From Eukaryota sp. TZLM1-RC (Eukaryota > Protista > Metamonada: BaSk clade): DNA of 64,000 nucleotides. Every line of letters begins with the position of its first letter. Positions within the stretch are counted from its first letter, which is position 1. Positions 358 to 60,668 of this stretch are shown here, one piece after another. The notes beneath the pieces are model-generated. The model did not search any database. It saw only the letters and a program-made list of their open reading frames with translations, and was not told the DNA's origin. The stretch lies in NCBI GenBank assembly GCA_040285825.1, contig JAUPSS010000010.1:310001-374000 (forward strand), in the 5' to 3' direction. Made by a program: the position numbers and the translations under genes.

Positions 358-438
358 TGTTGGCGCCCTAAGGCTTTTATAATATGAATAGAAAATAAAT
401 TATCTTTATCTCAACCACTTTTGCAACCTAAGGCAACA
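358..438 (+). repeat. 5' LTR, 81 bp (family A copy 1)
   Basis: Exact direct repeat of 7333-7413; contains TATAAT-like and AATAAA motifs. Confidence 0.97.
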
Positions 439-461
439 ATAATTATTGGCCGTATTAGGTT
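425..461 (+). promoter_or_regulatory. U5/leader stem-loop with palindromic 8-mer ATAATTAT at the PBS position
   Basis: AACCTAA-GGC-[AA]-CA|ATAATTAT|TG-GCC-[GTA]-TTAGGTT; pairing covaries in three other elements of the window. Confidence 0.8.
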
Positions 462-522
462 ATAGGTATACCGCTTACATAATTCACAGCTTTATATTCA
501 GAGGATATCTTCAGCAGATATC

Positions 523-3500
523 ATGTCAGTCTCTCCTCGCCAGGACACTGACTCTTTTAAGATTTTCATGCAACAGCACGACAGAGATGCATATAACACA
601 TTCACAACAATAGGAGTAGAAGCAAAGAGTGAGGATTCGGGCTCGAGACCACCCTCGGCCCCCCCCTCAAGAGAAACCAATGGAACCAGGCACGGAACCA
701 CCTCCCGCCTCTTCCAAATCAAAAACAATGGAACCAGGCACGGAACCACCTCCCGCCTCTTCCATGTCCAACAAACCAGATAAGGTTTCAGGAACGGGAC
801 CACCCCCCTCCTCACCTAAAGAAAATGTTGGGTTAAGCTCGGATACTTCGTCTGTCCTAAAGGACTACGAAGAACTCCAGTCCGTTTTAGAAGAAATGGA
901 CGACGATGAAAAAGAGCTTCGCCAACAGATAACGAAGGACGCGGAAGCTCACCTTGAACCAACAGATTACTGTTTGTTTGAGCAGCTCCCTCCCCTTTGG
1001 AAGCAAATATCAAAATCTGGTAGAAATGTGGGATTCCAGACTCTGGGCCATAAAGGGGACCCTAATAGAGTCTACGAATTCCCTCAAAATGAGAGAAGAG
1101 AACTCATTAACGCGTTGGACACTTTGAGTAGAGAGACCTATGGACGCGGGGCAGAACGCCGTCCTAGGATAACCGGTATGGATAGAGAGATCCATGTGAT
1201 TCTGGCAAAACCTATCAAAGATAGGCCTGATTGGGAAGCCATTCACTTAGATCAGTTCGGGAGAAGGATTAGGTTCTTACCCATCGAAAGAAGGAGCAGA
1301 ACCGATACCGACGACATCCTGGAAACCAAATTACCGGCATGGTTGGACTCGCACTTTGATACGATCATCCATAACTACTCAGAGGTAGAGGATGGGGCTC
1401 CTACTTGTTTCAGAGAATACATGGAACAAGCAGACAGCACAAATCCAAAATCAAGTAAGTTGGATCCCGTCAGTGACTTCTTTGACGCGGACGCCCTAAA
1501 TAATATACTTACGGAACGTTCAAGCGTATCCACATTTAGGAGCCGCCCAAATAACTTCATTCAGCAATTCGGGGAATCAACGACAAGGAAGAAGAAGTTC
1601 AGGTTCTTGGTCACGGGCGATCAATCAACAGAGCTCCACCAGAGACCTAAACTTCCTATAATTGCCCCAATTATATCTGAAAAAGAGCAACCGGTACAAG
1701 TCTGTTCCATTGACGTACTCCCTGATCACATCCCAACAGTAGATGTGACAGAACGAGCAAACAGACCTACCAGAGTGGTTCAGGGACCATCAAGTCCCTC
1801 CCAACCCATGCTCACTAGCGCATCAGAAGACGAAGTCGAGTTGAGAGGACCTAGTTTAGATGAAACACCTCCTCCTCAACCCCCTCGTAGAAGAGTTACT
1901 TCTGAGGAGCCTCTCCGTTTGGAAGACCTCCAAGCTTCTAGAAATATTTTGGATATGAGTATAGCAAGTAGTCTTCAGAGACATGTGGACTCTCAGCCTA
2001 GGTCAGCTGAATATAAAGCCCCTCACCTATCTGAGAAGGACCCTCTCAATAAGATGTCTCTCGTCTCCTTCCTCCTCAAATTCCAAACATGGGACAAATA
2101 CGGGCGCAAGATAGCCAATCGAAGCTTTCAAGCCCCTGGTCAATCTGATTGGTCTCGTGCTATGTTGATAGCAACCCAAATATTTGGCGAAGGAAAGACC
2201 CAGATTACCCCTGAGTTGTTATCATCACTCCCATCTCACATCAGAGAAGAAATAGACAGGGACATGAAACAGCCACTCTTAAGGATCGACCCAGAACTAA
2301 CGAAACGTTTGGGACCTCCTATCCATCATTATGACTTATTTAGAAGTATGATGATTAGTACTTGTCCATCCGGCTTATCAAGCATGGTCGACCCCCATCT
2401 CATCTCTAGATGGCAAGGCCAAGGACTTCTAAGACCGGACTTCTCAGACGCCGACCTAATGGTTTTTCTGCTACGCAGGACACAATTTACCTCATATCAT
2501 GAGGCTTGCTCTGCCCTAGCAAAACCATGTATAAACTGGAGAAACATCCACAACAAAGTGGATGCGGACAACGAATTTGGTAGGTTCGTCGAAGATTTTG
2601 GAGACGTCCTGAGGATGACCACTTACATGGTTGACCACTCCATATCTGCATCAATTAGGGGAAGCAGCGGTTTAATAACCCTCTCACCCGCCCTTATTGC
2701 AGAATACTTTCTCTTGGGCATAGATAATTTTGCCATTACCAAGGAGCTGGCAAGCCATTGGACAAGAGAAGATCTATGGGACCCTTCAACAGGTACAACT
2801 TTGTTAGACCTGATTTCGACCACCAGGAGACACTTTCTAGCTTGGTGCCAAACAACAGGAAATAGGCACACCATGGAACTTTTGAGAAAACAAGCTGAAA
2901 GAGAAGAAGACATCCCATTAGGCCTTTCGACCATGAGAACGTTCTCTAGAGGAGCAACCCCATCTGGTCCAGGTACTAAACGTCGCTCGGGAGGCGGATT
3001 CAAAGGAACTCCCCAAAACAAATATGTCCCAGAAAGACATGAACGAGAGGGATCTAAGTTCTGTACATCCTGTAACGTTACCGAAGGAAATAACCCTATC
3101 GGTCACACGGTTTTCGAATGCAAAGACCCTCGTTGTACCAGGAGCAAGGTACCAAAAGAATTGAGGTTTAAGATCGGCGAGGCTGATCAGCCTGCGAGAA
3201 GTGGCAGTGTAGTTAGAGGCCGAGGTGGCCGTGGTAGACGTGTTTCTAGGTTTAGAGGTAGGGGCCGAGGTGGCCATTTTAGAGGACATAAAGGTAGAGA
3301 TCAATATAGACCTATTTATTACATAAATACACAAGAGGATACATCATCAATATCATCCCCTTCTGAGAACGTGTCAGCTAGTTCGAGCATGACCTCTCAC
3401 AGACGGATTGACCGTTTCAGCAACAGGGTCAGAAATACAGGAAACTTTCCCAATCGGAAACAAATCAACGCAATCAATCATAATCAATCAATTGCCGATT

Positions 3501-6500
3501 TCGGAAACCCAGTTAACAACTCCCCAACAGCTCAACAATTCTTACTAAATCCTCTACAATTCCACAAACCCAGCTCTGATATCAATAGTATTTTTGGTAT
3601 AGATTCTACGGTTAGTGAGAACCACATCAGATCCCAGCGTTCTCCATTTCTAAGATTGGAGATTTTAATAAATAATATAAAAATGATTGCAACTATTGAT
3701 TCGGCAGCGTTTTGTTCGGTTATAACAGAAGATTTGGCTAACAAATGCAATATGTCAATTAATAGAGATGATACAATTGAGTTCTTACCAGCCAATAACG
3801 TATCAAGTAAATCGCTAGGGAGTGCAAATGGTATTCTGTCGTTCAACGTAGGAAGCATTGCGCACCAAGTACATTATAGACATACTCTTCCCATAATCCC
3901 GGGTTCGAACAAATTATTAATAGGGTTAGACATGTTAAAAACACTTGGGCTTCAGACGGATGATGGTCTTTTCATTAGATTAGACAAAGAACACCGCGCT
4001 TTGTTAAATGCAGAATCTGAATTCGACTCAAGAATCGCTCAACATTCGATTAGGACCTTAGATAACCAATCATCGAGTCCTTCCGATTTTGAGGAGCAGT
4101 TAACTAGATCTGGTTGTGAGATAAAATTAGATGATGATAATAATAAATTAAAATTAACGAGTCTACTAAGAATTTTCAGCGATGTTTTTAGTGAAACTCC
4201 AAACAGAAAAGGAATCGATTGTAAACCTCTAACAATCCCCTTTAGAGACGAGAATGCTATAGTACATAAACCTGCTAGACGATTAAATCCCAGCAAAATG
4301 GAAATAGCAAACAAAATATTCGATGAACTGATTGAAATGGGCTATGCAGTTGAATCTAATTATAAATTCAGCTCTCCTATTGTCTTAGTTATATATCCTG
4401 ACGGCAAGAAACCCAGGTTAACGGGAGACTTTAGCGGTAAAGATGGAGTCAATGCCCACACGATTTCAGTAGAGCCTAATCTACCTAGGATTAGTGATAT
4501 TTTAGAATTTTTAAGTAGAGCAGATTACATAGCCACGCTTGATTTACCAAAAGCTTTCTGGCAAATGAATGTAGCAGAGAAGGACATTGAGAAAACATCA
4601 ATCTCAATCCCTGGAAGGTCAATTATGTTTAAAAGAGCGTGCTTCGGATTAAAGAACATCCCAGCAGTATTTCAAAATATAATGATGGAAATATTCCAAA
4701 TTGATGGCGTTTTCATATATATTGATGATATTATAATAGTTGGAACGACTTTCGATGAATTCTATAAGAGATTACAAAAAGTCCTCCAATGCGCCAGAAA
4801 TAGACGTGTAAATATAGGATTACGTAAATGTAAATTCGTAACATCCAAACACCCTATTGATATTTTAGGAAGCACCTTCCAGGATAAAACCAGATTTATT
4901 AGTAAGAAAAAAATCGAAGCCTTGATGAGAATACCTAGACCAAAATCAGTGAAAGAAGTTCGCTCATTGGTAGGATCCATCAATTATATAAGAGATTGGC
5001 TTCCAGGTATTTCTGAATTAATTGCTCCAATTAATGAGTTAATTAAAGGAAAACCTAGAGTAATAAAATGGACCAACGAGCATGACGATTATCTTAAACA
5101 AATAAAAGATTTAATAATTAATCACATGCCCCTTGAATTACCAGCTCCGGGCAAGCGCGTACTAATAAGTACCGACGCATCAGATGTAGCAGTTGGAGGC
5201 GTTATTTGGCAAGAAATTGAACCATACTCCCCTGCAGGGACCCCGCTGAATAAAAGAAAAGTGGAACCTTTGTCGTTCTATAGTAGATTACTTACAGAAA
5301 CACAAAGAAAATGGTCCACTTTACAGAAAGAATTATATGCAATTCTTCTGATTTTAACTGAAAGTTGTTTAGAAAGCTACCTTTTGACTAGACATCTAAC
5401 AATTTTCACCGATCACAAAAATATTGCATTCCTGGCCACAGCCCCAGAGAAAAATAGAATTGTAAAGAGATGGCTGCCGATACTATCTGAATTCGACTTT
5501 GATATAGTCCACGAACCAGGTGAAGATAACCACTGGGCAGATATGCTATCGAGGAATATTGATTTAGATCAAAATGAGGAAACTCCTTCTATATGTAGTA
5601 TAAATATACCAGATACTTTACTTTCGAATTACGAGATACCTCCTATAGACGATGATTCTGATTCGGACTTCGAAGACATCCCATCAATTTCATCCCTAAG
5701 TAGACACCAGGACTTACCTATTTTTTCTTCTTGGTTCTCCAAAATAAGATCTGAACAACAAATAGCCAAAAATAATAATGACCCTCTATTTGAGAATGCA
5801 ATTCTAGATGAAAATACTCAAATTTGGAAAAACAATAAAAATAAAATTTTAATTCCAAAAAGCCTCAGAAAACAGGCACTATTATTAATTCATGGATTGG
5901 TTCAATCAGGCCACCCCAGCAAAAACGACAGTCTACATAAACTGTCCAAAAGCGACTTTTTCTGGCCTAATATGAGAAAGGACCTCATAAACCACATCAA
6001 AAGATGCCCAACTTGTCAAAAAACGGCACCAGTTAAAAGAACAAAAACACCTTCCACAGGTTCCCTTTGGGCAGATCGTCCTTTTGCCAGACTAAATGTT
6101 GACACAATTGGACCTCTGAATACTGATAGTGATGGTAATAAATACTTATTAGTATTTGTAGATTCTTTTACTGGATATTCAATTTTAGTCCCTCTGAAGG
6201 AACTCAATGCCTTAGAGACCGCAGACGCTTTGATTTGGAACGTTTGTGCAATTTTTGGCATACCTATGTTAATTCATAGTGATAATGGTCCCGAGTTCGC
6301 CAATGAGACTTTTAAGATAGTGTGTAATAGATTAGCTATTGAGATGAGTAACTCAATACCCCACTACTCTGAAAGTAATGGACTCGTAGAGCGAAAACTT
6401 AGAGACGTTCTACAATGCTTGAGGAAATTATTAATAGATTTTAATGATTATGGAAATTGGTCTACTTATGTACCCATATCCCAACTATTAATAAATTCCA

Positions 6501-7216
6501 CTAAAAGCAGAAAGACAGGTTTTACACCTTACGAACTAATGTTCGGATCTTCGATTAGTCCAAGATCGGACCCTGCAAACATATTAGGAAACTTATCAAA
6601 ATTTGATTCCAATATACCTTTATTAGACGATATTAAATTGAAAAATACTCGTCTGCAAGAAAAAAGGGAAGAAGCAGAGCGTCATCAATTATCAAATACT
6701 CCGATTTCAGTTGACAATACTAATTCGCGCTCTATAGTATTTAATATTGGTGACTATGTCCTACGTAAAACCAAACAGAATAATAAATTACATGGATCTT
6801 GGAACGGACCCTTTTTAGTAATAGACCGTCCTTCCAACTCTACTTTATTATTAAAGAATCTTATCACTGGCAGTGAATTAAAAGCTGCTAAGAAAGATTG
6901 CAAAATCTATAACGCAGATAATCCTCAGGATATCGAATTTCTAAAAGCAGTCGCAGCAGGCGATGCTGAGAAACATGTTATAGAGAAAATCCTCTCAGAA
7001 TATAATTCTGACTCAGGTAGTTTCTGTACTGTTCAATGGTTTGGCGGTGAGACAACAGAAGAGCCTCTCCATTCAGTTAAACATTCAGAAGCTTACAAGT
7101 TGTTCAGTAGGAATAACAAGAAAATTGGAAAACGTACCTCTAGTCAACGTAAGAGTACCTCCAATAGCTCTACGCCTTGCAAGAGGCCTAGACGTAGTAC
7201 TAGAATTAGGAAGTGA
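523..7216 (+). CDS. Gag-Pol polyprotein (Gag, Zn knuckle, aspartic protease, RT, RNase H, integrase, chromodomain-like tail); one frameshift at the C8 run 659-666
   Basis: ORF 629-7216 has IDSAA (PR), LDLPKAFWQ and YIDD (RT), TDASD and TDHKN (RH), HHCC plus D-D-(L/H)VER (IN), WNGPF and a chromo-like VIEKIL..VQWFG. ORF from ATG 523 resembles the N-terminus of copy 2 (MS..QD..MQQ), so 523 is the likely start. Confidence 0.93.
678..822 (+). repeat. ~48-bp tandem repeat in the gag 5' region (MEPGTEPPPASS units)
   Basis: AATGGAACCAGGCACGGAACCACCTCCCGCCTCTTCCA occurs twice, plus degenerate neighbouring units. Confidence 0.85.
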
Positions 7217-7332
7217 TGCTAATTCTCAGTTTAGATTAGGTTATTTTTAGTTATTTAGTTATTTAGTTATTTGTTTATAGTTTAGATTCATATCTATATA
7301 AGCCTATTAGCTCTGAAAAAGGGAAGAAGCAG

Positions 7333-7413
7333 TGTTGGCGCCCTAAGGCTTTTATAATATGAATAGAAAATAAATTATCTTTATCTCAACCACTTTTGCA
7401 ACCTAAGGCAACA
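7333..7413 (+). repeat. 3' LTR, 81 bp (family A copy 1)
   Basis: Preceded by PPT, followed by TSD CATC. Confidence 0.97.
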
Positions 7414-10946: not shown

Positions 10947-11100
10947 TGATGGTCTTGGCTGTTGGTTATTGTCTGACATACAATGTGGAGTAACAGAAGT
11001 GTAATTTATTACGAAGAGGAATTGTATTCTCTCTTCTTAAGCTAACAGGCGGAATACTAATAACTAAACTATTAACTATAAATACTATTCAAGACTAACA
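10947..11100 (-). repeat. 3' LTR, 154 bp (family B)
   Basis: Exact repeat of 18201-18354; TG...CA ends. Confidence 0.96.
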
Positions 11101-17800: not shown

Positions 17801-18233
17801 GTACTTCAGAACTTCTTTCAGGGAGGGGAGAAGATGGGACTTCAGATACCCTCAGTTGCGAAGGAGGGAGAGGAGCAACGGAATCCTCAGCATCTTCATC
17901 GTCGTAGGAGACTAATGAAGGGCTTCTTCCTTCCGAAGGAATAGAATCCTTAGGAGGGTTGTCTCCTTCCACCGGAACGGAATCCAGAGGAGGGGAACTT
18001 CCTTCCATTGGAACGGAATCCTCAGGAAAGGAACTATTTTCCTTTGGGGTGGAACCCTCAGGAAGAGTTGCTTCAGGAAGCGCAGCAGCTTCAACCGAAG
18101 AAGGAGGCACGGAAGCAGGGTCTGTGGTTAGAGGTGAGGAAGAGGGACCAGTCTCTTCCTCAAGGATCCTACGCTGAGCCGGGGACGACCCAATACGTAT
18201 TGATGGTCTTGGCTGTTGGTTATTGTCTGACAT
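14827..18233 (-). CDS. Family B Gag (long Pro/Ser-rich N-terminus); Zn knuckle CNFCKQMGHPTERC in the -1 frame
   Basis: ORF 14787-18233 shares the DLFRS and LRRTQF motifs with family A Gag; CCHC and RGG tail are in ORF 14827-15087. Confidence 0.85.
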
Positions 18234-18354
18234 ACAATGTGGAGTAACAGAAGTGTAATTTATTACGAAGAGGAATTGTATTCTCTCTTCTTAAGCTAAC
18301 AGGCGGAATACTAATAACTAAACTATTAACTATAAATACTATTCAAGACTAACA
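18201..18354 (-). repeat. 5' LTR, 154 bp (family B); contains the gag ATG
   Basis: Exact repeat of 10947-11100; ATG at 18233 lies inside it. Confidence 0.96.
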
Positions 18355-33183: not shown

Positions 33184-33391
33184 TGTTGCCTAAAGTCTAT
33201 TGTAGTAAAGAAAAGTCTGATTTATTTTCTATTCATATTATATAAGCCTTAGGGCGCCAAGACTGCTTCTTCCCTTTTTCAAAATAAATCAGCTTATATG
33301 AATATGAAATAAAAACTATATACAAATAACGAAATAACTATAATAAATACATATAATCGATATAATATAAATAATCGATATAAACTAAGAA

Positions 33392-39300: not shown

Positions 39301-40202
39301 TCGGTCCTACTTCTCTGCTCGATGGAGAGAAACCTTATTCTCCTACCGTGTTGATCTAGGAAGGAGGCCTTCCAGTTCGATCTATCTTTGATGGGAAGGG
39401 ACATCATTTCGTTGATTCTCTTGTCCATACCCGAGACTCTGGGGCGGCGCTCTGCGTTACGCCCGAATGTCTCTCTACTCAGTTTATCAAGCGCCTTTAT
39501 GAGTTCATTCCTTTCATTGAGGGGAATTTCCAATACCTTTTGGGTATCCCCAATCATTCCGAGGGTCTGGAAACCAACGTTTCTGCCTCTTTTTTGAATG
39601 TAACTCCATAAAGGGGGAAGCTGCTTGAATAGACAGAAATCTGTTGGTTCGAGGTAAGCCTCCGCGTCCTCTCTTAATAACTTGTAGAACCCCTCGGAAG
39701 AGTCGTCTTCTCCCTCCATTTCATCCAGTTGAGATTGAATTTCTTCATATTCTCCTAATGGGGAAGACGTGTCTGAGGTGGGATTTCCATCCGTTCCCTT
39801 TGAGACAGGTTCTAGAATTGGGAGGGGAGAGGGAGCCGGGTCCGTTCTCGTTGCCTCCGAGGACAATTCTGAATACTTGAGGGGAGAGGGAGCCGGGTCC
39901 GTTCTCGTTGCCTCTTCCATTGCTTTGAGGGGAGAGGGAGCTGGGTCCGTTCTCGTAACCTCATCTGTTTCTTTTTTCCTGAGGGGAGAGGGAGCCGGGT
40001 CCGTTCTCGTTACCTCTTCTGTTGCTGAAGATGGAGGGACCTCGTCCACTCTTTCATCTTCTTCTACTTTAAGGGAGGGGGAGGTGGGATCCGGGTCCGT
40101 TGCCTCGTTACCCTCTATATTATGTTTATGTGTCGCTGGTACCTGCTGCATGTTAAGTGGGGGATTAGAGTCAGAGATATCTTGTTGGAAGATGTCTGAC
40201 AT
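33392..40202 (-). CDS. Gag-Pol polyprotein; one frameshift at an A7 run near 33950
   Basis: ORFs 33897-40202 and 33392-33826 are colinear with A1; Pol is very similar, Gag is diverged. Confidence 0.93.
39820..40110 (-). repeat. TRTDPAPSPL-encoding tandem repeats in the gag 5' region
   Basis: GAGGGGAGAGGGAGCCGGGTCCGTTCTCGT four times plus one degenerate unit. Confidence 0.85.
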
Positions 40203-41009
40203 GCTGTAAAGTGTCTGGGGATGTTCGCTAATGCTGAAGTTATGGTATACCTTTTGACTTTAAAATGGCCAATAATTATTGTTGCCTAAAGTCTATTGTA
40301 GTAAAGAAAAGTCTGATTTATTTTCTATTCATATTATATAAGCCTTAGGGCGCCAACAGAAGTACAGGCTGCTATCAGTCATCTTCCTTAAGGAAAAGCA
40401 GCAGGTCCATCTGGTATTTCATTTGATGTTCTGAAGTTCGCTTGTAGAAAGGCCCAGAAATTTGCGATGTTCTTGCTGATTTTTTTTCAAATTTTAGTTT
40501 GCCTAAAAAAATCCTCCGACTGTATTATTAGTGGCTCGTTTGCCTTAATAAAAGCTGGAAATGGTAAAAAAACCTGATGTAATTCGTCCAATTGCCGATG
40601 GTGAATCAATTCTTTGCATCAATTTTTTTCAATCATGTTGCTTCAAAAGCTGCAAGATAGTTAGCTCCTTTTCAATTTGACATTAAAACAATTGAATATA
40701 TTTCCAATCTTTTATTTATTGGGAAAAATGGCCTACCGTAGTTTTATCAATATTTTTTATTGCTATTTTGAGCTGCCAAAAAGGCTTAGGTAAATTTAGA
40801 GTTGCTTTATAATTAGCTTTGTTTAGAAACTCCAAAATGTCGCTAATCCTGGGCAAATTTGCCTCTACAGGTTTAATTAAATCGTTTACTCTACCTATAT
40901 TATGGAAATCGCCAGTTAACCATGGTTTTCTGTGATCAAGCTAAATCACAAGACGGATGGGACTACTGAATTGAGACTTTGCGGGCGCAGCAAATCCAAT
41001 TCGTTCAAA

Positions 41010-42109
41010 TGATGCCGTTAGGCAGAAATACCAAAGATGAAAAGAAGAAAAGAGAGCTTTATTAATTGAAATACTTGTTCTTGAACAAGTGCCACGTCAT
41101 CATGTAAATTCCTCATCTGTCTACCAAGTTAGTTTATCAGTAACAACAACACTACTTCTTCCCATTTTCTTTCAACAGTTTCGTAAACCATTTAGCATAA
41201 TGAAGATAGGGGATTTGTGAGATACTGAGGCACGTGGTGTAAAAGATTTACTTCGTGCTTAACTTTTGAGGGACAATCACGAGCTAGATGACCTTTCTGA
41301 TGACATTTGAAACATGTTCCGTCAGTCAAATTGCGAGACCTATGGGATAAACGAGACTTCATACCAGCTTGACGCACAGAATCAGTATTTTCAGACACAG
41401 TCTTTGAAGACCTGTTCCAAGAAGCTACTCGCGTGCAATCAAGTAGTTCATCCTCTGCGGTATTTACCAATGTAGGAAAATCGGGGAATACCTCGTTCCG
41501 AATTCGAGAAATCAGGGATTTCTGCAGTCCTAATGAAAATATATCCTTGGCGAAACTGATCATGAAGGCTGAGTCAGGCAATTTCAGTCCGGAAGCCCTG
41601 CTTTTTGCCTGAATAAAACGTCTCAGGTAGCAGGACATACGTTCCCGGACGTCGCCCTTACGGACATCAACCTTCAACTCAGACATCACCAAGTTGAATT
41701 CCTCGTACGAGAGAAACGAGATGGAGTATCTCAAATGATCCAGAAACACTTCATCGGATGAATCAACCCCAGGTTTTGTGAGAACCAATGAATCTAACAA
41801 GAAGGGGTCAACGAGGAGCCTTGCTGGAACAAGGTCCTTCTTCGGTGTAACAGAAGAGTGCACCTTCAACAGTTGTAGGAACAACAGAACATCATCCACT
41901 TCCATAGAAGCAAGGGACGAATGTGGTAATTGTGTAGATATCATCTGCAATGAGGGCGAACAATTATTGATGCCGTTAGGCAGAAATACCAAAGATGAAA
42001 AGAAGAAAAGAGAGCTTTATTAATAGAAATACTTGTTTTTGAACAAGTGCCACGTCATCATGTAAATTCCTCATCTGTCTACCAAGTTAGTTTATTAGTA
42101 ACAATAACA
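41010..42109 (-). mobile_element. 1.1-kb Gag-only non-autonomous LTR element (TR-GAG/TRIM-like)
   Basis: 142-bp LTRs (41010-41151, 41968-42109) with 4 mismatches; TSD CAAA at 41006-41009 and 42110-42113; PPT GAAAATGGGAAGAAGTAG. Confidence 0.93.
41192..41944 (-). CDS. Gag with CCHC zinc knuckle
   Basis: CFKCHQKGHLARDC; the open frame extends to 41992, inside the LTR; first ATG is 41944. Confidence 0.85.
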   Translation of the reverse strand: MISTQLPHSSLASMEVDDVLLFLQLLKVHSSVTPKKDLVPARLLVDPFLLDSLVLTKPGVDSSDEVFLDHLRYSISFLSYEEFNLVMSELKVDVRKGDVRERMSCYLRRFIQAKSRASGLKLPDSAFMISFAKDIFSLGLQKSLISRIRNEVFPDFPTLVNTAEDELLDCTRVASWNRSSKTVSENTDSVRQAGMKSRLSHRSRNLTDGTCFKCHQKGHLARDCPSKVKHEVNLLHHVPQYLTNPLSSLC

Positions 42110-44901: not shown

Positions 44902-47436
44902 ATGGCGAGACATCCAATATCTTCTACATACAAGGGTCCCTTCAGGCATCTGTATTCTTCCAAATGCTTTATACGTTTTGGAGGTGCTCTATACCACTCT
45001 CTGACCAAACCTTCATCTCTCAATTTCTCGTGGGTTTGTCACTATCTTCTTGCATGTTTGTTCAAGTTTGTTCATTGGATCATCTCATCCTCTTCATCTG
45101 GTACATTTACGCAACTTCATTTGTTCTTCGACTCACTCTTCTACTTCTTGCTCACCATTTCGTTCGCTTTTCTATTTTTGTCTCTACTATTCTATCTATT
45201 CAATCTGATCTCGCTCCCTGTCCTTGGTTTTCATGTCACTCTCTACATTGTCAATACCCTCCTCATCTTGGCTCCTTTCATCGACACGTTGCTTCAATCA
45301 ATTGCTGGTCTTACACTTTCTCCTTCCACTATTGCAATGTATTTGAGCCATGATGGCGTGCCAGAAGGTCAAAATGATGACGTCAGCGATCCCAGTTTGA
45401 TTGAAAAAGTGATTGATGTGATGAAAATGGGCTTTGATCTTGATTTTGCCAGTTGCTTCTTGTTAACAATTTTTTTAATTATTTGGGTTTTTTGTGTTGT
45501 TTTATTAACCATTTATTTAAAAAAATTACCTAAATTTAAATCAAAAAGTTTTAAATTATTTCTAATTTCTGGCACTGTTTCTTTAATCATCATCTTTGCT
45601 TCATTTGTTATTTCCACCACTTCACTAGTGAAGGTACCTCCTGAACTTGTTATGTTTTCATATGGTGAAGGTTTTGACAATGCAAAAAGAAAAAATTTGC
45701 CAGAATTGCCCAATTATATCAGCAATCAGTCCATGAATTCCACCAATTTTATGGAAGATGAATTAAAATTGGACCCAAACTATCAATTAATTCGTGATTA
45801 CTACCCCCTTCCGAAAGATCGTTATTGGATTTCTAATCAATATCCATTGATTCATGGATCATTGAACAAATTATGCAAAAATTACCCCAAAGATGTCAGA
45901 TGTCAAAATTTCAAACTTGATCCCTATTTTGAAATTGAAAGACCAGACATCTTCCTTCTACTTTGGGAAAGTGTTTCTGGCAACTTTCTTTCCACATCAT
46001 CTAATCCATTTTTTGACGACTGTACACCAAACCTTGATAAATTATGGAAACAACATGGTGTTGTTTATGATCAGGTTGTGTCAAGTAGTTGTCCTACTGC
46101 AAATTCTTGGTGGTCAATATTTAATCAAATTTTACCTATTCCAACCGAAAGTAGTATTAAAACGACTTTAAATACGAAATTCCAATCATTTCCTAATTTA
46201 ATTTCAAAGTCAAATGCTAATTATACAAGAATCTATATGTCTGGAGCTAGTCCTGCTTTTGATGGTAAACATAGATGGTTAGAACAAAAAGAAAATAGTG
46301 ATCAAAATTTCTATAAATATGAAAATTCTCCTGTTTGGTCTGGTTCTGGATACACAAAAAAGTTCAATAATGATCGAATTTTGGTCGACCAAATGAAGAA
46401 AACAGTTGACCAATATGATGAAGAGTCTGTAAATAAGCCACTTTTTCTCTGGTCTCTTTCTATATCAACTCATCTTCCCTTCTCAACATTTGATGACCCA
46501 AAAAAGGTAGGTTCTCAGCGTCCAAAGGATTGGGTTGAAGCTTACAAAAGGTCTTTACGATACAGTGATGAATATTTCATTGGTAGATTTATTGATTATT
46601 TAAAGACAAGAAACCGAGCTAATAATACAATTGTCGTTATTCAACCCGATCATGCTGCTTATACGTTGATATTAAAAATGAAAAAGTTTGGTGGTTCCAA
46701 GTCCCTTTTTACTTGTCTCAATTGTCCAGAAGATCCTATTTCAACTCACGATGAACTTTATCACACAACCTCTATAATTCTTTTCCTTGGAGGGGAAGAA
46801 CAACGGAAAAAATTAAAGATTCCACCTCCAGGAACAAGAGATTCAAGGGTGGCTTCTGTTTTTGATGTTATAAGCACCATTGTGGAGTTTTCAGGTGCTG
46901 GTGATGAACCTACCCATTCATTAGGCAGAAGTTTAGTTAATCCTAATATGGATGATTCATTAAGAAAGACCCTTTCAATGGCTAGTAATGGTGCTGAACT
47001 TGGATTAAGTGATTCTATTGTTCGAACTGATTGGACGGGGGCTAAGGCTGTCACAATGCCAAGAAAAAGACCAACTTACATGAATAATAAGGATATGGTA
47101 GCAAATACTGATAAGTTTAAGGAAATTTCTGGAATTCAAAAGGGAATTGAACAATTAATTAGACAGAATATGGTTTGGAATGATCAAATTCAGGGTCAAG
47201 TTAATGAAATTCCAGAAGAAAATGCAACAGATTTCAACAATACTAAACAGCTCAATTTCAATACTGAAAATTCTTTTGGAAGAATGATTCTTTTGTTATT
47301 GTTCACAATTTCCATTGGTATTTCGCTTCTTTCTGTTTTATTTTCATTTTTATGTAATAATTTGGGGTCTATTGTTGCTCAGTCTTCTTATAAGTTTGAT
47401 GATTTCTACGACAAAATGATGGTTGAAATAGTTTAA
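44902..47436 (+). CDS. LtaS/OpgB-like membrane phosphotransferase (alkaline phosphatase/sulfatase superfamily)
   Basis: Several N-terminal TM helices; RPDIFLLLWES (metal Glu), CPT (catalytic Thr position), STHLPF, YSD, PDH; C-terminal TM helix. Confidence 0.85.
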   Translation: MARHPISSTYKGPFRHLYSSKCFIRFGGALYHSLTKPSSLNFSWVCHYLLACLFKFVHWIISSSSSGTFTQLHLFFDSLFYFLLTISFAFLFLSLLFYLFNLISLPVLGFHVTLYIVNTLLILAPFIDTLLQSIAGLTLSPSTIAMYLSHDGVPEGQNDDVSDPSLIEKVIDVMKMGFDLDFASCFLLTIFLIIWVFCVVLLTIYLKKLPKFKSKSFKLFLISGTVSLIIIFASFVISTTSLVKVPPELVMFSYGEGFDNAKRKNLPELPNYISNQSMNSTNFMEDELKLDPNYQLIRDYYPLPKDRYWISNQYPLIHGSLNKLCKNYPKDVRCQNFKLDPYFEIERPDIFLLLWESVSGNFLSTSSNPFFDDCTPNLDKLWKQHGVVYDQVVSSSCPTANSWWSIFNQILPIPTESSIKTTLNTKFQSFPNLISKSNANYTRIYMSGASPAFDGKHRWLEQKENSDQNFYKYENSPVWSGSGYTKKFNNDRILVDQMKKTVDQYDEESVNKPLFLWSLSISTHLPFSTFDDPKKVGSQRPKDWVEAYKRSLRYSDEYFIGRFIDYLKTRNRANNTIVVIQPDHAAYTLILKMKKFGGSKSLFTCLNCPEDPISTHDELYHTTSIILFLGGEEQRKKLKIPPPGTRDSRVASVFDVISTIVEFSGAGDEPTHSLGRSLVNPNMDDSLRKTLSMASNGAELGLSDSIVRTDWTGAKAVTMPRKRPTYMNNKDMVANTDKFKEISGIQKGIEQLIRQNMVWNDQIQGQVNEIPEENATDFNNTKQLNFNTENSFGRMILLLLFTISIGISLLSVLFSFLCNNLGSIVAQSSYKFDDFYDKMMVEIV

Positions 47437-50919: not shown

Positions 50920-51715
50920 GATGTTCTCCCACAACTCTATTTTAACCACCGTAGTAGATCTACTTGTTTAGAAATCTGTATTCACATCTAAATCTCTTTC
51001 TTTTGCCTCAACTTTCTTCAATGCCAATGAATGATGGTATTTGATCCGGCGAATGACCTAGATTTAGATGTTGTGGTTCATTCTGAATAGAAGTTTCTTT
51101 TGTTAATTGATACATTGTGTTCTAGTATAAGGAGGAAGGAGAAATACAGTGTTGTGATATTGATGAAATGAACTAAGTGCTGAACTCACAGAATCAGTGT
51201 TCGGAATGGACACGTGTTATTCGGGTTGGACACGTGTCGTACACGTGTTGACATGTGTCCCCATCCCAAAAAAAATCTTTTTCCTCCCTCTCCACTAATG
51301 CTTTTCCTCAACTGCTCAACGTCGTTTCCCGCCTACAAACTCTTGACACTACATCCAACGAATCCTCGTACCAAAATTAAAACTACTGTCAATTGTAGTC
51401 TATTTGACAAATTTATGACTGGAATAAACTACCGCTTTGTTGGACATGTTTGCCCCAATTTTTGAAACAGAAAAAATGCTTTGTGTGAAAAGCTTCACTC
51501 TTGCTGATCGCATAACCCTGAACGAAATCCGCATGTCTGCTTCACGCAATCTCCTACCAAACTCTCAAGCACCTGTTGAACATCCAAACAGACAGCCACG
51601 CATCAATGATGTCTTTTCTTTGGCTAACAACTTCAAGGCCAATTGTGATCTTGCCCTTTTCAACATGCTCGTTTTTTGTGCATTCCCTTCACATATTGTT
51701 GGTAACCCTGATTGC
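50920..51715. mobile_element. hAT-related remnants: homology to the MITE at 20878-21480, then a CAGTGTT-starting end with ACACGTGT repeats and a transposase-like N-terminal remnant
   Basis: Sequence match to 20953-21385; CAGTGTT at 51195; ALFNMLVFCAFPSHIVGNPD resembles the hAT N-terminal region. Confidence 0.55.
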
Positions 51716-54700
51716 ATTAATATTAGCAAAATTGCATGTCCTGCTATTCCGGTTGCTGTTGTTGATCCGTCTGTGAGAAACCGTACTTGAACGGGTCAGT
51801 TTTAGCTCAGTAGGGTATGCGTTTGATGATATGTCCTCTGTGGTTTTGGTGTTGTATACAGGTCTTCATTGACCTCTTCCTTTATGTCCTCTCAAACGGC
51901 CTCCTCGGCTTCCAAATCTAAATCTATTAACACGTCTACTTCGGCCTCTTTCTGAAACTGCCTCTGCTAGCAGGCACCTCCTGTTCTCCTAATTTGAGTC
52001 TTTCTTATTCGAGTTAACGAGGGTCTCTACATTCAAACACAGTGTGGCCGACAGTATTGTTGCTTTCGACGTTGCTAGCAAATGTGCAATATTTTGAGCC
52101 TTCTCGTTCGTGCTTTTCCGGGATATATTTGTGTTGAGGGGTTCTTCTCGATTTACCACCTGAACGCCTTGCTTGTTTTGTTGGAGCTTAAGCTAATGGA
52201 GTTATTCATCTTGAATAAGTTCTTATCGTTGTTAGTCCCACAGCAATGTTTTCTTCGTTAGCCCTGTTCTTTAGTATGTCCATAGTGGGTCTTTTTCTTG
52301 CTGTAATTCACCAGGCAAAAAAAATGCCTTCTGGTTGTCCTGTTAGGCGAATCCCACAAAGATTCTCTGGACTATACTGGAAGGAATTCGCTTGATATCG
52401 TAAGGTTAACCAACCCCATTAGGAAGTATTCCACTATTGAAGCGGGAGATATGGTTATCAGCTACTACCATCTTTCATCAAGTCTGTGATGATCTTATAG
52501 GTGGTCATTCCTAAGACGTCTCTGAGGTTTTCTACATACCGACCAAACTCATTGTCAGCCTCGTACCTATTGTGGATGTTTGTCCAGTTAATCCTAGGCT
52601 TCATCAAAACAGTGTAAGCTTCGTGATAGGAGGTAACCTCCGATCTTTTTAGCAAAAATATCATTACGTCAGCGTCGGTGTAATCAACATTGAGTAAACC
52701 TTGATTTTGTCATCTGGATAGAAGGCTGGGATCGATTATGCTGGATATTCCTGTAGGACATGTGCTCATTATCATGCTCTTTAATAAGTCACAGCAGTGG
52801 ATTGGAGGCCGAAGCTCGTCTGTTATCGCTGGGTCAATACGCACCAAAGGCTCAACCATGTCTCTGGTAATTTCGTCTCGTATATGAGAAGGGAGATCTT
52901 CAATTCTTTTAGGTGTGACTGACTGGCCTTCTTTTTTTACTCATGTCAATCGCAATCTATTACACACTATTTTGAAGGTCTCATTGGTGAACTAAGGACC
53001 ATTATCACTATGAATTAACATAGGTATGCCAAAGGTGGCGCAAACGTTCCAAGTCAAGGCGTCTGCGGTTTTTAAGGCATTGAGTTCTTTTAAAAAGACT
53101 AAAAATGTATATTCAGTAAAAGAATCTACAAATACTAATCAATATTTGTTTCCTTCGTTTTCAGTATTCAGAGGTCCAATTGTGTCTACGTTTAGTCTTG
53201 CGAACGGACGATCTGCCTATAGCAATTTTGTGGAGGGTGTTTTTGATCTTTTAACTTGAGCCGTTTTTTTGACAAGTTGGGCATCTTTTGACATGGTTTA
53301 TAATTTCTTTTCTCATATTATGCCAGTAGAAATCACCTTTGGAAAGGAACTCTATGCAATTTTGGTCATGCTTACTCAAAGTGGTTTCGAAAAATACTTG
53401 AAAGGTAGGAAACTGGTCATTTTCACAGACCATCAAAACCTAACTTATATGTTCACCGCTAGACAGGAACAGAATAGTAACCAGATGGTTACCTATTTTC
53501 TCCGATTTCTGCTTCGAATTGGTTCATACCAAGGGCGAGTATAACTTCTGGGCCGATATGTTGTCTCGAATAGTTCCGCCTACAGACCATCAAAAGATCA
53601 ATCATTTGTCTTATCAAATGTCTCAAAATTTTCACCCAATATTTTACATCTTTTAAATAGACGCAACAGAAAACGAAAGATACTACATCGAAAATCTAAA
53701 CAACTTCGAACGTATTATGGTCATTAAAGAACGGTGTTCCGACGACCTCCCTATTTTCGAGCCATGGCTCTGTAGGATAAGGTCCGAACAGAAGCTTGCC
53801 ATAGCTTCCAAAGACTCCTCTTTTAACAACTGTGTTCATAATAATCATCTTGATTTATATATGACGCACGACAACAAGATAGTTATTCCCAAATCACTTA
53901 TTAAGGAAACCCTTAACTTGTTGCACGGACTGCTTCAAGGAGGTCATCCGAGTAAAGCTGAAACAAATACTAACAAGTATTTATTACCATCACTATCAGT
54001 ATTCAGAGGTCCAATTGTATCGACATTTAATCTAGCAAAAGGACGATCTGCCCAAAGGGAACCTGTGGAAGGTGTTTTTGTTCTTTTGACTGGTGTTGTT
54101 TTTTGACAAGTTGGGCATCTTTTGATATGGTTTATGAGGTCCTTTCTTATATTAGGCCAGAAAAAGTCGCTTTTAGACAGTTTATGTAGACTGTCGTTTT
54201 TGCTAGGGTGGCCAGATTGAACCAATCCATGTATTAATAGTAAAGCCAGTTTTCTGAGGCTTTTTGGAATTAAAATTTTATTTTTATTATTTTTCCAAAT
54301 TTGAGTATTTTCATCTAGAAGTGCATTCTCAAATAGAGGGTCATTATTATTCTTGGCTATTTGTTGTTCAGATCTTATCTTAGAGAACCAAGAAGAAAAA
54401 ATAGGTAGGTCTTGGTGTCTACTTAGAGATGAGATTGATGGGATGTCTTCAAGATCCGAATCAGAATCATCGTCTAGTGGAGGTATCTCGTAATTCGAAA
54501 GTAAAGTATCTGGTATATTTATACTACATATGGAAGGAATTTCCTCATTTTGATCTAAATCAATATTCCTCGATAGCATATCTGCCCAGTGGTTATCTTC
54601 ACCTGGGTCATGGACTATATCAAAGTCGAATTCAGATAGTATCGGCAGCCATCTCTTTACAATTCTATTTTTCTCTGGGGCTGTGGCCAGGAATGCAATA

Positions 54701-57700
54701 TTTTTGTGATCAGTGAAAATTGTTAGATGTCTAGTCAAAAGGTAGATTTCTAAACAACTTTCAGTTAAAATCAGAAAAATTGCATATAATTCTTTCTGTA
54801 AAGTGGACCAATTTCTTTGTGTTTCTGTAAGTAATCTACTATAGAACGACAAAGGTTTCACTTTCCTTTTATTCTGCGGGGTTCCTGCAGGAGAGTATGG
54901 TTCAATTTCTTGCCAGATATCACCTCCAACTGCTACATCTGATGCGTCAGTACTTATTAATACGCGCTTGCCCGGAGCTGGTAATTCAAGGGGCATGTGA
55001 TTAATTATTAAATCTTTTATTTGTTTAAGATAATCGTCATGCTCGTTGGTCCATTTTATTATTCTAGGTTTTCCTTTAATTAACTCATTAATTGGAGCTA
55101 TTAATTCGGAAATACCTGGAAGCCAATCTCTAATATAATTGATGGATCCTACCAATGAGCGAACTTCTTTCACTGATTTTGGTCTAGGGATTCTCATCAA
55201 GGCTTCGATTTTTTTCTTACTAATAAATCTGGTTTTATCCTGCAAGGTGCTTCCTAAAATATCAATAGGGTGTTTGGATGTTACGAATTTACATTTACGT
55301 AAACCTATGTTTACACGTCTATTTCTGGCGCATTGGAGGACTCTTTGTAATCTCTTATAGAATTCATCGAAAGTCGTTCCAACTATTATAATATCATCGA
55401 TGTATATAAAAACGCCATCAATTTGGAATATTTCCATCATTATATTTTGAAAAACTGCTGGGATGTTCTTTAATCCGAAGCAAGCTCTTTTAAACATAAT
55501 TGACCTTCCAGGGATTGAGATTGATGTTTTCTCAATGTCCTTCTCAGCTACATTCATCTGCCAGAAAGCTTTTGGTAAATCAAGCGTGGCTATGTAATCT
55601 GCTCTACTTAAAAACTCTAAAATATCGCTAATCCTAGGTAGATTAGGCTCTACTGAAATCGTGTGGGCATTGACTCCATCTTTACCACTAAAGTCTCCAG
55701 TTAACCTGGGTTTCTTGCCGTCAGGATATATAACTAGGACAATAGGAGAGCTGAATTTATAATTAGATTCAACTGCATAGCCCATTTCAATCAGTTCATC
55801 AAATATTTTGTTTGCTATTTACATTTTGCTGGGATTTAATCGTCTAGCAGGTTTATGTACTATAGCATTCTCGTCTCTAAAGGGGATTGTTAGAGGTTTA
55901 CAATCGATTCCTTTTCTGTTTGGAGTTTCACTAACAACATCGCTGAAAATTCCTAGTAGACTCGTTAATTTTAATTTATTATTATCATCATCTAATTTTA
56001 TCTCACAACCAGATCTAGTTAACTGCTCCTCAAAATCGGAAGGACTCGATGATTGGTTATCTAAGGTCCCAATCGAATGTTGAGCGATTCTTGAGTCGAA
56101 TTCAGATTCTGCATTTAACAAAGTGCGGTGTTCTTTGTCTAATCTAATGAAAAGACCATCATCCGTCTGAAGCCCAAGTTTTTTTAACATGTCTATCCCT
56201 ATTAATAATTTGTTCGAACCCGGGATTATGGGAAGAGTATGTCTATAATGTACCTGGTGCGCAATGCTTCCTACGTTGAACGACAGAATACCATTTGCAC
56301 TCCCTAGCGATTTACTTGATACGTTATTGGCTGGTAAGAACTCAATTGTATCATCTCTATTAATTGACATGTTGCATTTGTTAGCCAAATCTTCTGTTAT
56401 AACCGAACAAAACGCTGCCGAATCAATAGTTGCAATCATTTTTATATTGTTTATTAAAATCTCCAATCTTAGAAATGGAGAACGCTGGGATCTGATGTGG
56501 TTCTCACTAACCGTAGAATTTATACCAAAAATACTATTGATATCAGAGCTGGGTTTGTGGAATTGTAGAGGATTTAGTAAGAATTGTTGAGCTGTTGGGG
56601 GGTTGTTGACTGGGTTTCCGAAATCGGCAATTGATTGATTATGATTGATTGCGTTGATTTGTTTCCGATTGGGAAAGTTTCCTGTATTTCTGACCCTGTT
56701 GCTGAAACGGTCAATCCGTCTGTGAGAGGTCATGCTCGAACTAGCTGACACGTTCTCAGAAGGGGATGATGTTGATGATGTATCCTCTTGTATGTTTATG
56801 TAATAAATAGGTCTATACTGACCTCTGCCTTTATGTCCTCTAAAATGGCCACCTCGGCCCCATGTGGGTAATTGATGTTAGTTATTTCCGCATTTTCTAA
56901 ATGTATCTATGTTTCTTGACATCATGTCAGCCCAGTGATTGTCTTCTCCTTATTGGTGTACGATGTCAAAGTCAAGTTTTGACAAGATTGGTAACCATCT
57001 TTTGACGATTCTGTTCTTTTCAGGAGTTGTGGAGAGGAATGCAATATTTTTGTGATCTGTGAAAATGGTGAGATGTCTAGTAGTGGGAAAGCTTTTCAGA
57101 TGACTTTTGGTTAATATTATTAGAATCGCGTATAATTCTTTTTGCAAAGTAGACCAACCCTTTTGAGTATCGGTTAAAATCCTACTGTAAAAGGAATTTG
57201 GTTTTACTTTTCAATCTTTTAATGCAGTTCCAATGGGTGCATAAGGTGCCACTTCTTGTCAAATGACTCCTCTTATTGCAATGTCAGATGCATCGGTGCT
57301 AATCAGAATGCGTTTGTCTGGTGAAGGTAATTCCAGAGGCATGTGATTAATAATCAGTTGTTTTATTTGATCTAATAGTTGATCGTGTTTGGCTTCCCAA
57401 TTTACACGACGATGTTTGTGCTTGATTGACTCATTTATGGGTGCTATTGGTTGTGAAATATTTGGGAGCCAATCTCTTATGAAATTGACTGAGCCAACTA
57501 ACGACTGTATTTTCTTGATAGTTTTTGGAGCAGGTAGGTTTATTAAAGCATCTACTCGTTTTTTGCTAATTTTTCTTTGTTTGAATTGGAAAGTGCTGTA
57601 TAGAATGTCAATTTTTTGTTCGGACCTAAATACGAAAATAAACTAGGAATGTGGGTCGCCCCCAGGATTGGTAAATACCTATCATTTGAAAGAATTGAGC

Positions 57701-58175: not shown

Positions 58176-60668
58176 TTAAACTAAACCTACATTTTCAAAA
58201 TCTTCCAGTGCCTCTTGAGTTTTTGATATTCCTAAAACAGCCAGTTTAAATCTAGAAAAAGCAAACAAAGAAGGTTTCACACAAAGAGAAATTGATATAC
58301 AAAAAAACATTAAAAAGCACAAGTAAATCAACACAATATTGAATTCCTTATCTGCAACTAGTGGAGTAGGATGAGTTAAAGAAGGAAATTGTTCTGAATC
58401 CTTCAAAAAATCACGATGCCACAAACGATTAGATTTAACCAAATAATTGTAAATCATATTAACTCTAATGATCTTTGGAAACCATTCAGTTTCAGTAGTT
58501 ATTGCATCTGGATGAGTAAAAGTTGGATGAGGTCGCATCAACTCCAACCTAGTGCTACCAGACCAATCAACCCGGACTATACTATCAGGTAATCCAAGTT
58601 CAGCACCAAGTGATATTAAAGATAAACTTTTTCTGGTATCATCATTGACTTTGCTATTCAAAAGTGATCGTCCCATTGAATAAGAAACCTCATCACCAGA
58701 ACCTGTCAAATCAGCAATAGTGGCAACCATATCAAGAGCCGAAACTGCTCTGTAATCCCTAGTTCCAGCTTTGGGAATGCCTAATTTACGTCGTTGATCA
58801 TCATCACCTAAATAAGCTAAAACTGCTGAAGTATAAAATACAAGGTCGTTATCAAAGGGGGATTGGGGACAATCAGGACAGTTAGGGGTTAGTTTTGGAA
58901 CTTTATAGGCGGCATGGTCCCCCATAATAATAACTACTGTATTTGAGTTATTTCTAGAATTAATATATTCCAGCATTTTTTCAACTAAATATTTGTCTGA
59001 ATACTGAGTTGCTCTAAATAAACGTTTGGCCTTGGTCTCTGGCCATGGTGAACCAACAATTTCAGGATCATCAAAAGTAGTGAAGGGATTGTGAGTTGAA
59101 ATAGAAGTCACCCAATTGAAAATAGGTCTATTTGGATAGGTTTTAGAAATCTTATCAGTCCGTTCCTTAACATGATCAACCAGAATCCGGTCATTATTCC
59201 AAATTTTGGCGAATTTTTGACCTAATGGGCTTGGATAATCAGCTGCTTTTTCAGTATTGGCATATTTGAAATAAACATCATCAATATCACTTCGATCGAG
59301 CCAAGAATCCTTACCATCAAAGTTAGGGTTAGCAGAAGAAGTGTATAACGTGGCATAATTGGCTTTGCTTCGCTTAATTACATCAAAAATACTATCAGTT
59401 TCAACTCCCAAAGTGTCAATGATAGTGTTGCCATGGCTTAGGGGTAAAGCTTGATTAAAGATTGACCAAAAAGAATTAGCAGTAGGACAAGCATTACTTA
59501 CTAATTCATGGTACAAAACACCATGTTCTTTGAAAAGCTTTTTTAAATTGGGCGTCGCATCATCAAGCAAAGGATTATCAACAGCTGAATTAATGGTTCC
59601 AGTCAAGCATTCCCAAACAATGAAGAAAACATCAGGTCTTTCTTGAGGAGGTATGACGTCATCAATCACCTCATCTTTTTGACCTTCTTTCTGGCACTCA
59701 GAATCATCAGGATTGAACTGACAAAACTTTTCAAAATCACCATGAACTAATGGAAAGTCATTGGAAATCCAATATTGATCTTTGGGAAGTTGGAAAAAGT
59801 CTCTGATAAGTTCGACATCTTCTTCGTAATTTGATTGAGGATATGCTGGTGAGGAGAAAAGGAAATGAGCATCAGCAATCTTGGTTGCTACATGAATTGG
59901 TTCGTGGGAGTTACGCAAGTAAAAACTAGAAGGAAGTAATAAATAGATAAAGGAAATTCCAACAATTAAATAAAAACAAACCTTAGAAATTGAGATAAAT
60001 ATTTTAAATTTTCGTAGATTACTGGACAAAATTTGACATAATACAATCACTACAACAGCTTTGAGTAAAGCTTTTGTCAATTGATCAGTTATTTCAGGGG
60101 AATAGGACCTAGCGATATAAATTGAATCAAAAATAACTGAAAAGGGACTTCCACCAGTGCCACTTGATGAGTATGCTTGTAAAGTACTGGGGGTCAGTTT
60201 CTGACCGGCAGTTAACGAGAAGATGACGTCAGCAATGGGTAAAATTAGAACTGCGAGAGAGAAAATGTAGAAGAAGATGTAGAAACCAATTGAGTGAATG
60301 GAAGTTAATCTAAAGAAGAGGAATATGGCAAAGTATATAAGAACGTACAGAGCCACAGCATTGAATACCCAGGATTGGTAGAAGGGAAACAGATTGTAGG
60401 TGAAATACTTGTGCACTATGCGTCCAGAGAGCCCAAAAAGACCAAGGAAAGAGAGATGGCTAATGAATAGTCTAGAGAGAAGAACAGACATGAGTGGGAG
60501 AACAAAATCATAAGAGAACAATGACTTACTGTTGAATGGGGAACTGGGAGAACTATGGTTGACATTGCAAGACTTCTTTGGTGACAAAAGACGGGACAGT
60601 AGGTGTAGAGGTGCAACAATGGTTGTAGACAGTCGACGTAGTAACCTAGAGGGAGGTATGGTTCTCAT
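58176..60668 (-). CDS. LtaS/OpgB-like membrane phosphotransferase, paralog of 44902-47436
   Basis: RPDVFFIVWEC, CPTANSFWS, STHNPF, YSD, MGDH; same topology as the paralog. Confidence 0.85.
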   Translation of the reverse strand: MRTIPPSRLLRRLSTTIVAPLHLLSRLLSPKKSCNVNHSSPSSPFNSKSLFSYDFVLPLMSVLLSRLFISHLSFLGLFGLSGRIVHKYFTYNLFPFYQSWVFNAVALYVLIYFAIFLFFRLTSIHSIGFYIFFYIFSLAVLILPIADVIFSLTAGQKLTPSTLQAYSSSGTGGSPFSVIFDSIYIARSYSPEITDQLTKALLKAVVVIVLCQILSSNLRKFKIFISISKVCFYLIVGISFIYLLLPSSFYLRNSHEPIHVATKIADAHFLFSSPAYPQSNYEEDVELIRDFFQLPKDQYWISNDFPLVHGDFEKFCQFNPDDSECQKEGQKDEVIDDVIPPQERPDVFFIVWECLTGTINSAVDNPLLDDATPNLKKLFKEHGVLYHELVSNACPTANSFWSIFNQALPLSHGNTIIDTLGVETDSIFDVIKRSKANYATLYTSSANPNFDGKDSWLDRSDIDDVYFKYANTEKAADYPSPLGQKFAKIWNNDRILVDHVKERTDKISKTYPNRPIFNWVTSISTHNPFTTFDDPEIVGSPWPETKAKRLFRATQYSDKYLVEKMLEYINSRNNSNTVVIIMGDHAAYKVPKLTPNCPDCPQSPFDNDLVFYTSAVLAYLGDDDQRRKLGIPKAGTRDYRAVSALDMVATIADLTGSGDEVSYSMGRSLLNSKVNDDTRKSLSLISLGAELGLPDSIVRVDWSGSTRLELMRPHPTFTHPDAITTETEWFPKIIRVNMIYNYLVKSNRLWHRDFLKDSEQFPSLTHPTPLVADKEFNIVLIYLCFLMFFCISISLCVKPSLFAFSRFKLAVLGISKTQEALEDFENVGLV

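Follow-up and report, generated by a model that had tools for sequence, protein, structure and literature searches.

The 64,000-nt window analyzed here, by which we mean the whole stretch of DNA from Eukaryota sp. TZLM1-RC (which we take to be Skoliomonas litria), contains four LTR elements, namely A1, A2, B, and a gag-only element. A1 lies on the forward strand and begins with an 81-nt 5' LTR (358-438, TG..CA) that contains a TATA-like motif and AATAAA and is 100% identical to the 3' LTR at 7333-7413, with the target site duplication (TSD) CATC on both sides. Its gag-pol ORF (629-7216) encodes protease, reverse transcriptase (RT), RNase H, and integrase, and a polypurine tract (7317-7332) directly adjoins the 3' LTR. 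The remaining elements lie on the reverse strand: A2 (5' LTR 40280-40358, 3' LTR 33184-33262), B (5' LTR 18201-18354, 154 nt, with the gag ATG at 18233 inside it; 3' LTR 10947-11100), and the gag-only element (5' LTR 41968-42109, 142 nt; 3' LTR 41010-41151). Element ends were set independently through the 3' LTR copies. Target duplications of 4 bp accompanied three of the four window elements (CATC for A1, TTAA for B, and TTTG for the gag-only element) and none was found for A2, the 3' LTR of which begins TCTTGG where TGTTGG is expected. With its odd 3' LTR start and absent TSD, A2 may be a recombinant between two copies. Pfam recovered protease, RT, RNase H, and integrase in the Ty3/gypsy order and, together with direct LTRs bounded by TG..CA, 4-bp TSDs, and the polypurine tract, this identifies the Skoliomonas elements as Ty3/gypsy LTR retrotransposons. 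Two features are unusual, the very small LTRs (79-156 nt across elements) and the long gag-pol proteins, with about 1000 aa upstream of the protease, a region in which Pfam found no unusual nuclease or terminal-protein domain. The N-terminal gag region also carries tandem repeats of about 54-57 nt encoding proline/serine-rich peptides (39810-40026 and 640-800). Elsewhere in the window, a decayed and rearranged A-like pol fragment without LTRs (51700-57100, 80-93% to A2) sits between sulfatase-family genes at 44902-47436 and 58176-60668.

The closest proteins to the RT-integrase region (58-64% identity) came from Eukaryota sp. TZLM1-RC, TZLM3-RCL, and GEM-RC1. GEM-RC and TZLM3-RCL are Skoliomonas strains, and Skoliomonas litria was the third skoliomonad sequenced, all of them free-living metamonads of soda lakes; retrotransposons are not discussed in the skoliomonad genome paper (PMC11316075). 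The DNA around annotated pol proteins was retrieved from three Skoliomonas assemblies and LTR pairs were delimited by self-BLAST, which yielded seven further full-length elements (L001, L002, L003, L005, L007, L008, and L012), every one with a 4-bp TSD. L005 has a near twin in L009, a locus of the TZLM1-RC assembly in which the A2 junction was found again. From the same assembly came L004, a decayed copy of the B family with LTRs 95% alike and nearly identical to B over the first 100 nt of the LTR. A metagenome scan with a pol alignment retrieved no relatives.

The sequence that follows the 5' LTR, where a primer binding site (PBS) is normally sought, has a peculiar geometry in all of these elements. 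In A1, the LTR-terminal CA, the next 8 nt (439-446), and a TG at 447-448 together form a 12-nt palindrome (437-448, forward strand), the proposed priming and dimer site. This palindrome is the apex of a hairpin (425-461) in which the terminal 14 nt of the LTR supply the 5' arm and leader sequence supplies the 3' arm. The corresponding hairpins on the reverse strand lie at 40256-40293 in A2 (palindrome 40270-40281), at 18177-18214 in B (palindrome 18191-18202, inside the ORF), and at 41937-41990 in the gag-only element, where the 12-mer (41958-41969) is imperfect, with one G.U pair and TC for TG. The sequences quoted for these four junctions in an earlier note on this DNA agree with the letters of the window. 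Directly after the terminal CA, the 8-mer reads ATAATTAT in A1 and A2, ATACGTAT in B, and ATAATTGT in the gag-only element, and it is followed by TG in the first three and by TC in the last; all are perfect palindromes save for one G.U-type mismatch in the gag-only element. Bases past the TG can pair with the LTR end, with two unpaired nt (A, then A or T) bulging from the 5' arm. Chance alone would rarely produce perfect 12-mers of this kind in the window; for the B 12-mer, 0.1 occurrences are expected.

The same layout was found in the seven further elements, with the 8-mers ATACGTAT in L001, ATAATTAT in L002, GTACGTAC in L003 and L012, GTAATTAC in L005 and L008, and ATTATAAT in L007; in the decayed L004 the 8-mer is mutated. 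The palindrome therefore begins exactly at the LTR end in 11 of 11 intact full-length elements, which represent at least seven lineages, and the LTR end itself is fixed by 4-bp TSDs in all of them except A2. Given a CA end, such a junction has a chance of about 1/4096 per element. Where the LTR ends in TA (L002), the 8-mer is followed by TA, a double change that preserves the 12-nt symmetry. The amino acids encoded by the 8-mer differ, which places the constraint at the nucleotide level.

The earlier note had also claimed that these junctions covary, and this proved to be the case. In an ungapped core alignment of the 11 sequences (3-bp stem, 2-nt bulge, 12-mer, and 3-bp stem), 91.9% of the cells could pair versus 73.8% (sd 2.7) in shuffles, six of the nine core pairs had changed on both sides, and the covariation score was 0.50 versus 0.18 in shuffles, a value reached by 0 of 500 of them. 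As a control, sliding the partner by 1-3 columns lowered pairing to 24-46%. RNAalifold, run on the ungapped alignment, recovered only the top four pairs. Within the palindrome, which every family possesses, the outer pair alternates between AT and GC, the center between AT and CG, the third pair between AT and TA (L007), and the terminal CA..TG is replaced by TA..TA (L002). On the pol tree the central AT/CG switch took place at least twice, one switch separating the sisters L003 and L008 and another separating B/L001 from A. The two central pairs (columns 25-28 and 26-27) covary, yet they cannot form in a monomer hairpin. Since these innermost pairs are kept though impossible within one hairpin, the constraint is on pairing between two same-strand copies, and the idea that two genomes pair through the palindrome is borne out to that extent by these self-complementary central nucleotides. 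Cofolding gave an extended dimer 4-16 kcal/mol better than two hairpins. Finally, the tolerance of G.U pairs, seen in the gag-only element and the L009 units, points to RNA and not DNA. The constraint on the palindrome acts between copies.

The stem below the palindrome is more variable. Cognate U5 and leader arms pair with a mean of -9.6 kcal/mol versus -6.6 kcal/mol for non-cognate arms (permutation p < 5e-5), an effect that stems from A1, A2, B, the gag-only element, L001, L002, and L003; the A1 arms pair best with each other among those tested. Nevertheless, only about 7 of the 11 elements have a strong lower stem, and L005 and L012 are almost without one. The monomer hairpin is the minimum-energy fold in 9 of 11 cases, A1 included, and its z-scores against shuffles range from -0.2 to -2.2 (-0.6 in A1 and -2.2 in A2), that is, it is not unusually stable. 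The 2-nt 5' bulge is conserved, with its first A invariant and A or T at the second position, and these nucleotides also belong to the terminal inverted repeat of the LTR (TGTT..AACA). Of the conserved stem-loop first described for the window, then, what holds in all elements is the 12-nt palindrome; the stem-loop below it is a frequent helper.

Basal-stem differences between A1 and A2 had previously been counted as covariation, a reading that we do not retain. The U3 halves of the two elements are almost identical, and about half of the sequence differs in the part that starts at AATAAA and takes in the hairpin and the leader (358-700 versus 40020-40358). Since the pol proteins are 96% identical and the U3 near-identical, the compensated basal stem is better read as a swapped module than as three double mutations. 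The same contrast between a conserved part and a diverged R-U5/leader was observed between B and L004. It seems that the R-U5/leader module is exchanged between elements, or that it evolves much faster than the remainder of the element. A second 8-nt palindrome, GGTATACC, lies 2-4 nt past the hairpin in A1 (465-472, forward strand), A2 (40246-40253), and the L009 units, in which it has been kept while the surrounding leader diverged. B has AGGATCCT at about 18163-18170. Such second palindromes follow the hairpin in 4 of 11 elements (A1, A2, B, and, far downstream, L005), which is approximately the number expected by chance. Rfam returned no family matching the A1 leader.

A conventional primer site was sought next to the LTR, and the claim that a tRNA-type PBS is missing there stands: the junction is palindromic in every family and the first TGG is at +9 or absent. 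Specifically, no element carries the canonical TGG 0-5 nt from the LTR, the first TGG is at +9 in 7 of 11 elements, and L002, L007, and the gag-only element lack a TGG after the 8-mer. No tRNA genes were found in the 64-kb window, and no match of at least 8 nt was found to the three host tRNAs compared (Glu, Pro, and His, with genes taken from the fetched loci). The arm after the TG changes with the U5 of the element itself, unlike what would be expected for pairing with a fixed host RNA. Nor did we find a Tf1-type complement of at least 7 nt elsewhere in the LTR, the U5-end arm of the hairpin excepted, and within each whole element the only complement of at least 9 nt to the junction is the palindrome itself. 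The earlier statement that no conserved complement is seen in the LTRs is correct for the Tf1 position and needs amending for the 5' arm of the hairpin, which is made of the last ~14 nt of the LTR. In B, L001, L003, L007, and L008 a conserved ATGTC start codon sits within the LTR, 24-46 nt short of its end, and the hairpin is translated as part of the ORF. Given this position of the start codon (18201-18233 in B), the transcripts of these five elements must begin farther upstream than the 5' arm, which excludes a Tf1-like arrangement for them and implies a very short 5' UTR with an R-U5 of only about 30-50 nt.

In LTR retroelements the LTR end corresponds to the base beside the pairing site of the primer 3' end, to within the few bases that integrase may trim. 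Since the LTR end marks the primer 3' end and the palindrome is there in every family, the primer would be expected to end in the 8-mer; and since the only molecule with the 8-mer in every family is a second element RNA, trans self-priming is favored. Our tentative main reading, to which we give a probability of roughly 45%, is that reverse transcription is primed in trans within an RNA dimer held at the 12-nt palindrome, without a tRNA primer. Under this model the two genomic RNAs of a particle would pair antiparallel through the palindrome, with additional pairing, in most families, between the U5 end of the one and the leader arm of its partner. One RNA would then be cut just past its 8-mer, as the earlier note had proposed, by a nuclease that is most likely the RNase H of the element itself, as in Tf1. 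The 3' end so created, base-paired to +1 to +8 of the partner, would adjoin the last LTR base of that partner, and reverse transcriptase could extend its 3'-OH through U5 and R, with replication proceeding as usual thereafter. The primer would consist of CA plus the 8-mer and its site of the 8-mer plus TG, and because the two would overlap by 8 nt the site has to be a palindrome. If so short a primer were copied back when the plus strand is made, precisely 12 nt would be kept perfect, which would explain why the perfect symmetry ends at the 2-nt bulge. Trans priming has weak points too. An 8-mer made entirely of A/U is a weak duplex by itself, a palindrome in an apical loop is equally typical of a plain dimerization site, the helper arms are weak in L005 and L012, and the monomer hairpins are no more stable than shuffles.

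The second of these points leads to the reading that we regard as unlikely though worth serious attention, namely that the palindrome is a dimerization or packaging signal akin to the dimer initiation site (DIS), that another primer is used, for example a tRNA or tRNA fragment pairing from the TG(G) at +9, and that integrase trims the extra 8 nt. Palindromes at hairpin tips in the 5' leader drive the pairing of two genomic RNAs in retroviruses, Ty1, and Ty3, where they are known as PAL or DIS (PMC11381356), and the junctions resemble them in their self-complementary loop, covarying center, and preference for the dimer in cofolding. However, the retroviral, Ty1, and Ty3 sites exist in addition to a tRNA PBS and out of register with the LTR end, whereas here a separate PBS next to the LTR was not found, and it would be left unexplained why every family has the palindrome exactly in phase with the LTR end and includes the terminal CA in it. 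A tRNA placed at +9 agrees with the TGG found there in 7 of 11 elements, and the tRNA comparison covered three host tRNAs. It fits poorly with the three elements that lack this TGG, with a gap of 8 nt that exceeds the usual 0-5 nt, and with the sequence past the TGG, which differs between close relatives and tracks the U5 of the element itself. In our own reading, which follows textbook tRNA numbering, the sequence after the TG also appears to misfit the universal tRNA positions C61 and A58.

We consider it improbable that the hairpin primes in cis, either through a nick or through a protein as at the epsilon signal of hepadnaviruses, with the loop or bulge templating a short DNA that afterwards moves or is continued. 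This would suit the conserved architecture of lower stem, 2-nt 5' bulge, upper stem, and apex, and also the unusually long gag-pol with its ~1000 aa ahead of the protease. Epsilon-type priming calls for a terminal-protein domain on the polymerase and a primer templated by the bulge; Pfam found neither a terminal-protein-like domain nor an extra nuclease domain in the elements. Cis priming would also leave the self-complementarity of the central 4 nt unexplained, the lower stem is absent or weak in two families, and the conservation of the bulge could come from the terminal inverted repeat of the LTR alone. Very improbable, in our view, is classical self-priming in cis as in Tf1/sushi elements, in which the 5' end of the transcript folds back to pair just past the LTR. 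The arm past the TG is indeed complementary to the last ~14 nt of the LTR, and LTRs this tiny imply a short R-U5; against it are the five elements with transcripts that must start upstream of the 5' arm, the failure to find other LTR complements, and the 8 nt between the arms, which would leave almost nothing for a cis primer to copy. A DNA-level palindrome bound by a dimeric protein, for which 12-bp palindromes are typical, and a chance or assembly artefact deserve almost no credence: the sequence varies freely under constant symmetry, G.U is tolerated, and the feature recurs in all 11 elements, in three Skoliomonas assemblies and the window, at such low odds for each.

Compared with known systems, the suggestion that this is a new priming system was overstated. 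The same geometry was published in 2017 for fungal GalEa Copia elements, in which Donnart et al. described an 'unusual PBS' or 'Conserved Hairpin Site' and gave no model (PMC5445492), and the one later paper found to mention this hairpin site offers no mechanism either. In GalEa the terminal ..CA of the LTR is followed by CTGATCAGT or CTAATTAGT, a sequence that becomes a palindrome when the final LTR base is counted with it, and the changes fall mostly at positions 3 and 6, with G-C/A-T covariation (PMC5445492). Both groups of elements are without a tRNA PBS and have CA, then an 8-nt palindrome (CTGATCAG or CTAATTAG in GalEa), then T, with a symmetry that takes in the last LTR base and an axis 4 nt past the LTR end. 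On the one hand, GalEa elements are Copia elements of Pezizomycotina in which another box, CHSeq2, lies 6-41 nt downstream and is complementary to the first, with a fixed A/A mismatch. On the other hand, the Skoliomonas elements are Ty3/gypsy elements of a metamonad, no CHSeq2-like copy was found within 100 nt of their junctions, and their palindrome is the apex of a U5/leader hairpin with a symmetry that spans 12 nt (CA..TG).

A self-primer freed when RNase H cuts an RNA duplex has likewise been reported already, for Tf1 (review, PMC7175516). Tf1/sushi elements share with the trans self-priming proposed here the independence from tRNA, a primer taken from the RNA of the element itself, and flanking stems that help to present the site. 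They differ in that Tf1 uses the opening 11 nt of its transcript as the primer, which anneals in cis to a distinct PBS lacking palindromic symmetry, whereas in Skoliomonas primer and site would overlap, which would force both a palindrome and a second RNA. Trans priming has reportedly also been described for Tf1, in a paper cited in PMC7235257. Another Ty3/gypsy lineage, Skipper of dictyostelids, has lost the TGG-type PBS and carries a polypyrimidine tract in its stead, and a novel mode of self-priming is suspected for it (PMC5006619). This stretch is not a palindrome and, in contrast to the Skoliomonas junction, no hairpin has been described for it.

The Skoliomonas junction is therefore a variant of the known, unexplained GalEa arrangement and its first example from either Ty3/gypsy elements or a metamonad. 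That the rule of CA, 8-nt palindrome, and T(G) holds in a second superfamily and supergroup speaks for a functional design and not a quirk. The start of the minus strand is a defining step of retroelement replication and, to our knowledge, the only established ways of achieving it are tRNA priming (with the 3' end or a half-molecule) and Tf1-type self-priming in cis. As a guarded proposal, short of an even chance, the Skoliomonas Ty3/gypsy and GalEa Copia elements may together represent a third general start of LTR-retroelement reverse transcription, in which an 8-nt palindrome abutting the LTR is the place where an obligate trans self-primer is cleaved out of the partner RNA. If this holds in both groups, the mode would be ancient or have evolved repeatedly, and genome dimerization would be mechanically tied to priming. 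The 8-nt ruler and the covariation give concrete predictions, namely a cut after +8 and rescue in trans. For annotation, tools that require a tRNA PBS will mis-score such LTR elements.

Three other loci were not counted as junction cases. L006 and L011 are fragments only, with no LTR pairs. L010 (Logan contig SRR12623521) is a chromodomain gypsy element of 40% identity, likewise without an LTR pair, and at L010:199-210 it carries CAGTGATCACTC, a 10-nt palindrome upstream of the ORF. With no LTR pair against which to place it, CAGTGATCACTC at 199 is at most a possible junction of this kind. Lastly, L009:20020-25560 is a tandem array with a period of about 1354 nt, in which at least five units consist of an A2-like LTR and a short gag-type ORF, and each unit bears the same junction palindrome together with the GGTATACC box.
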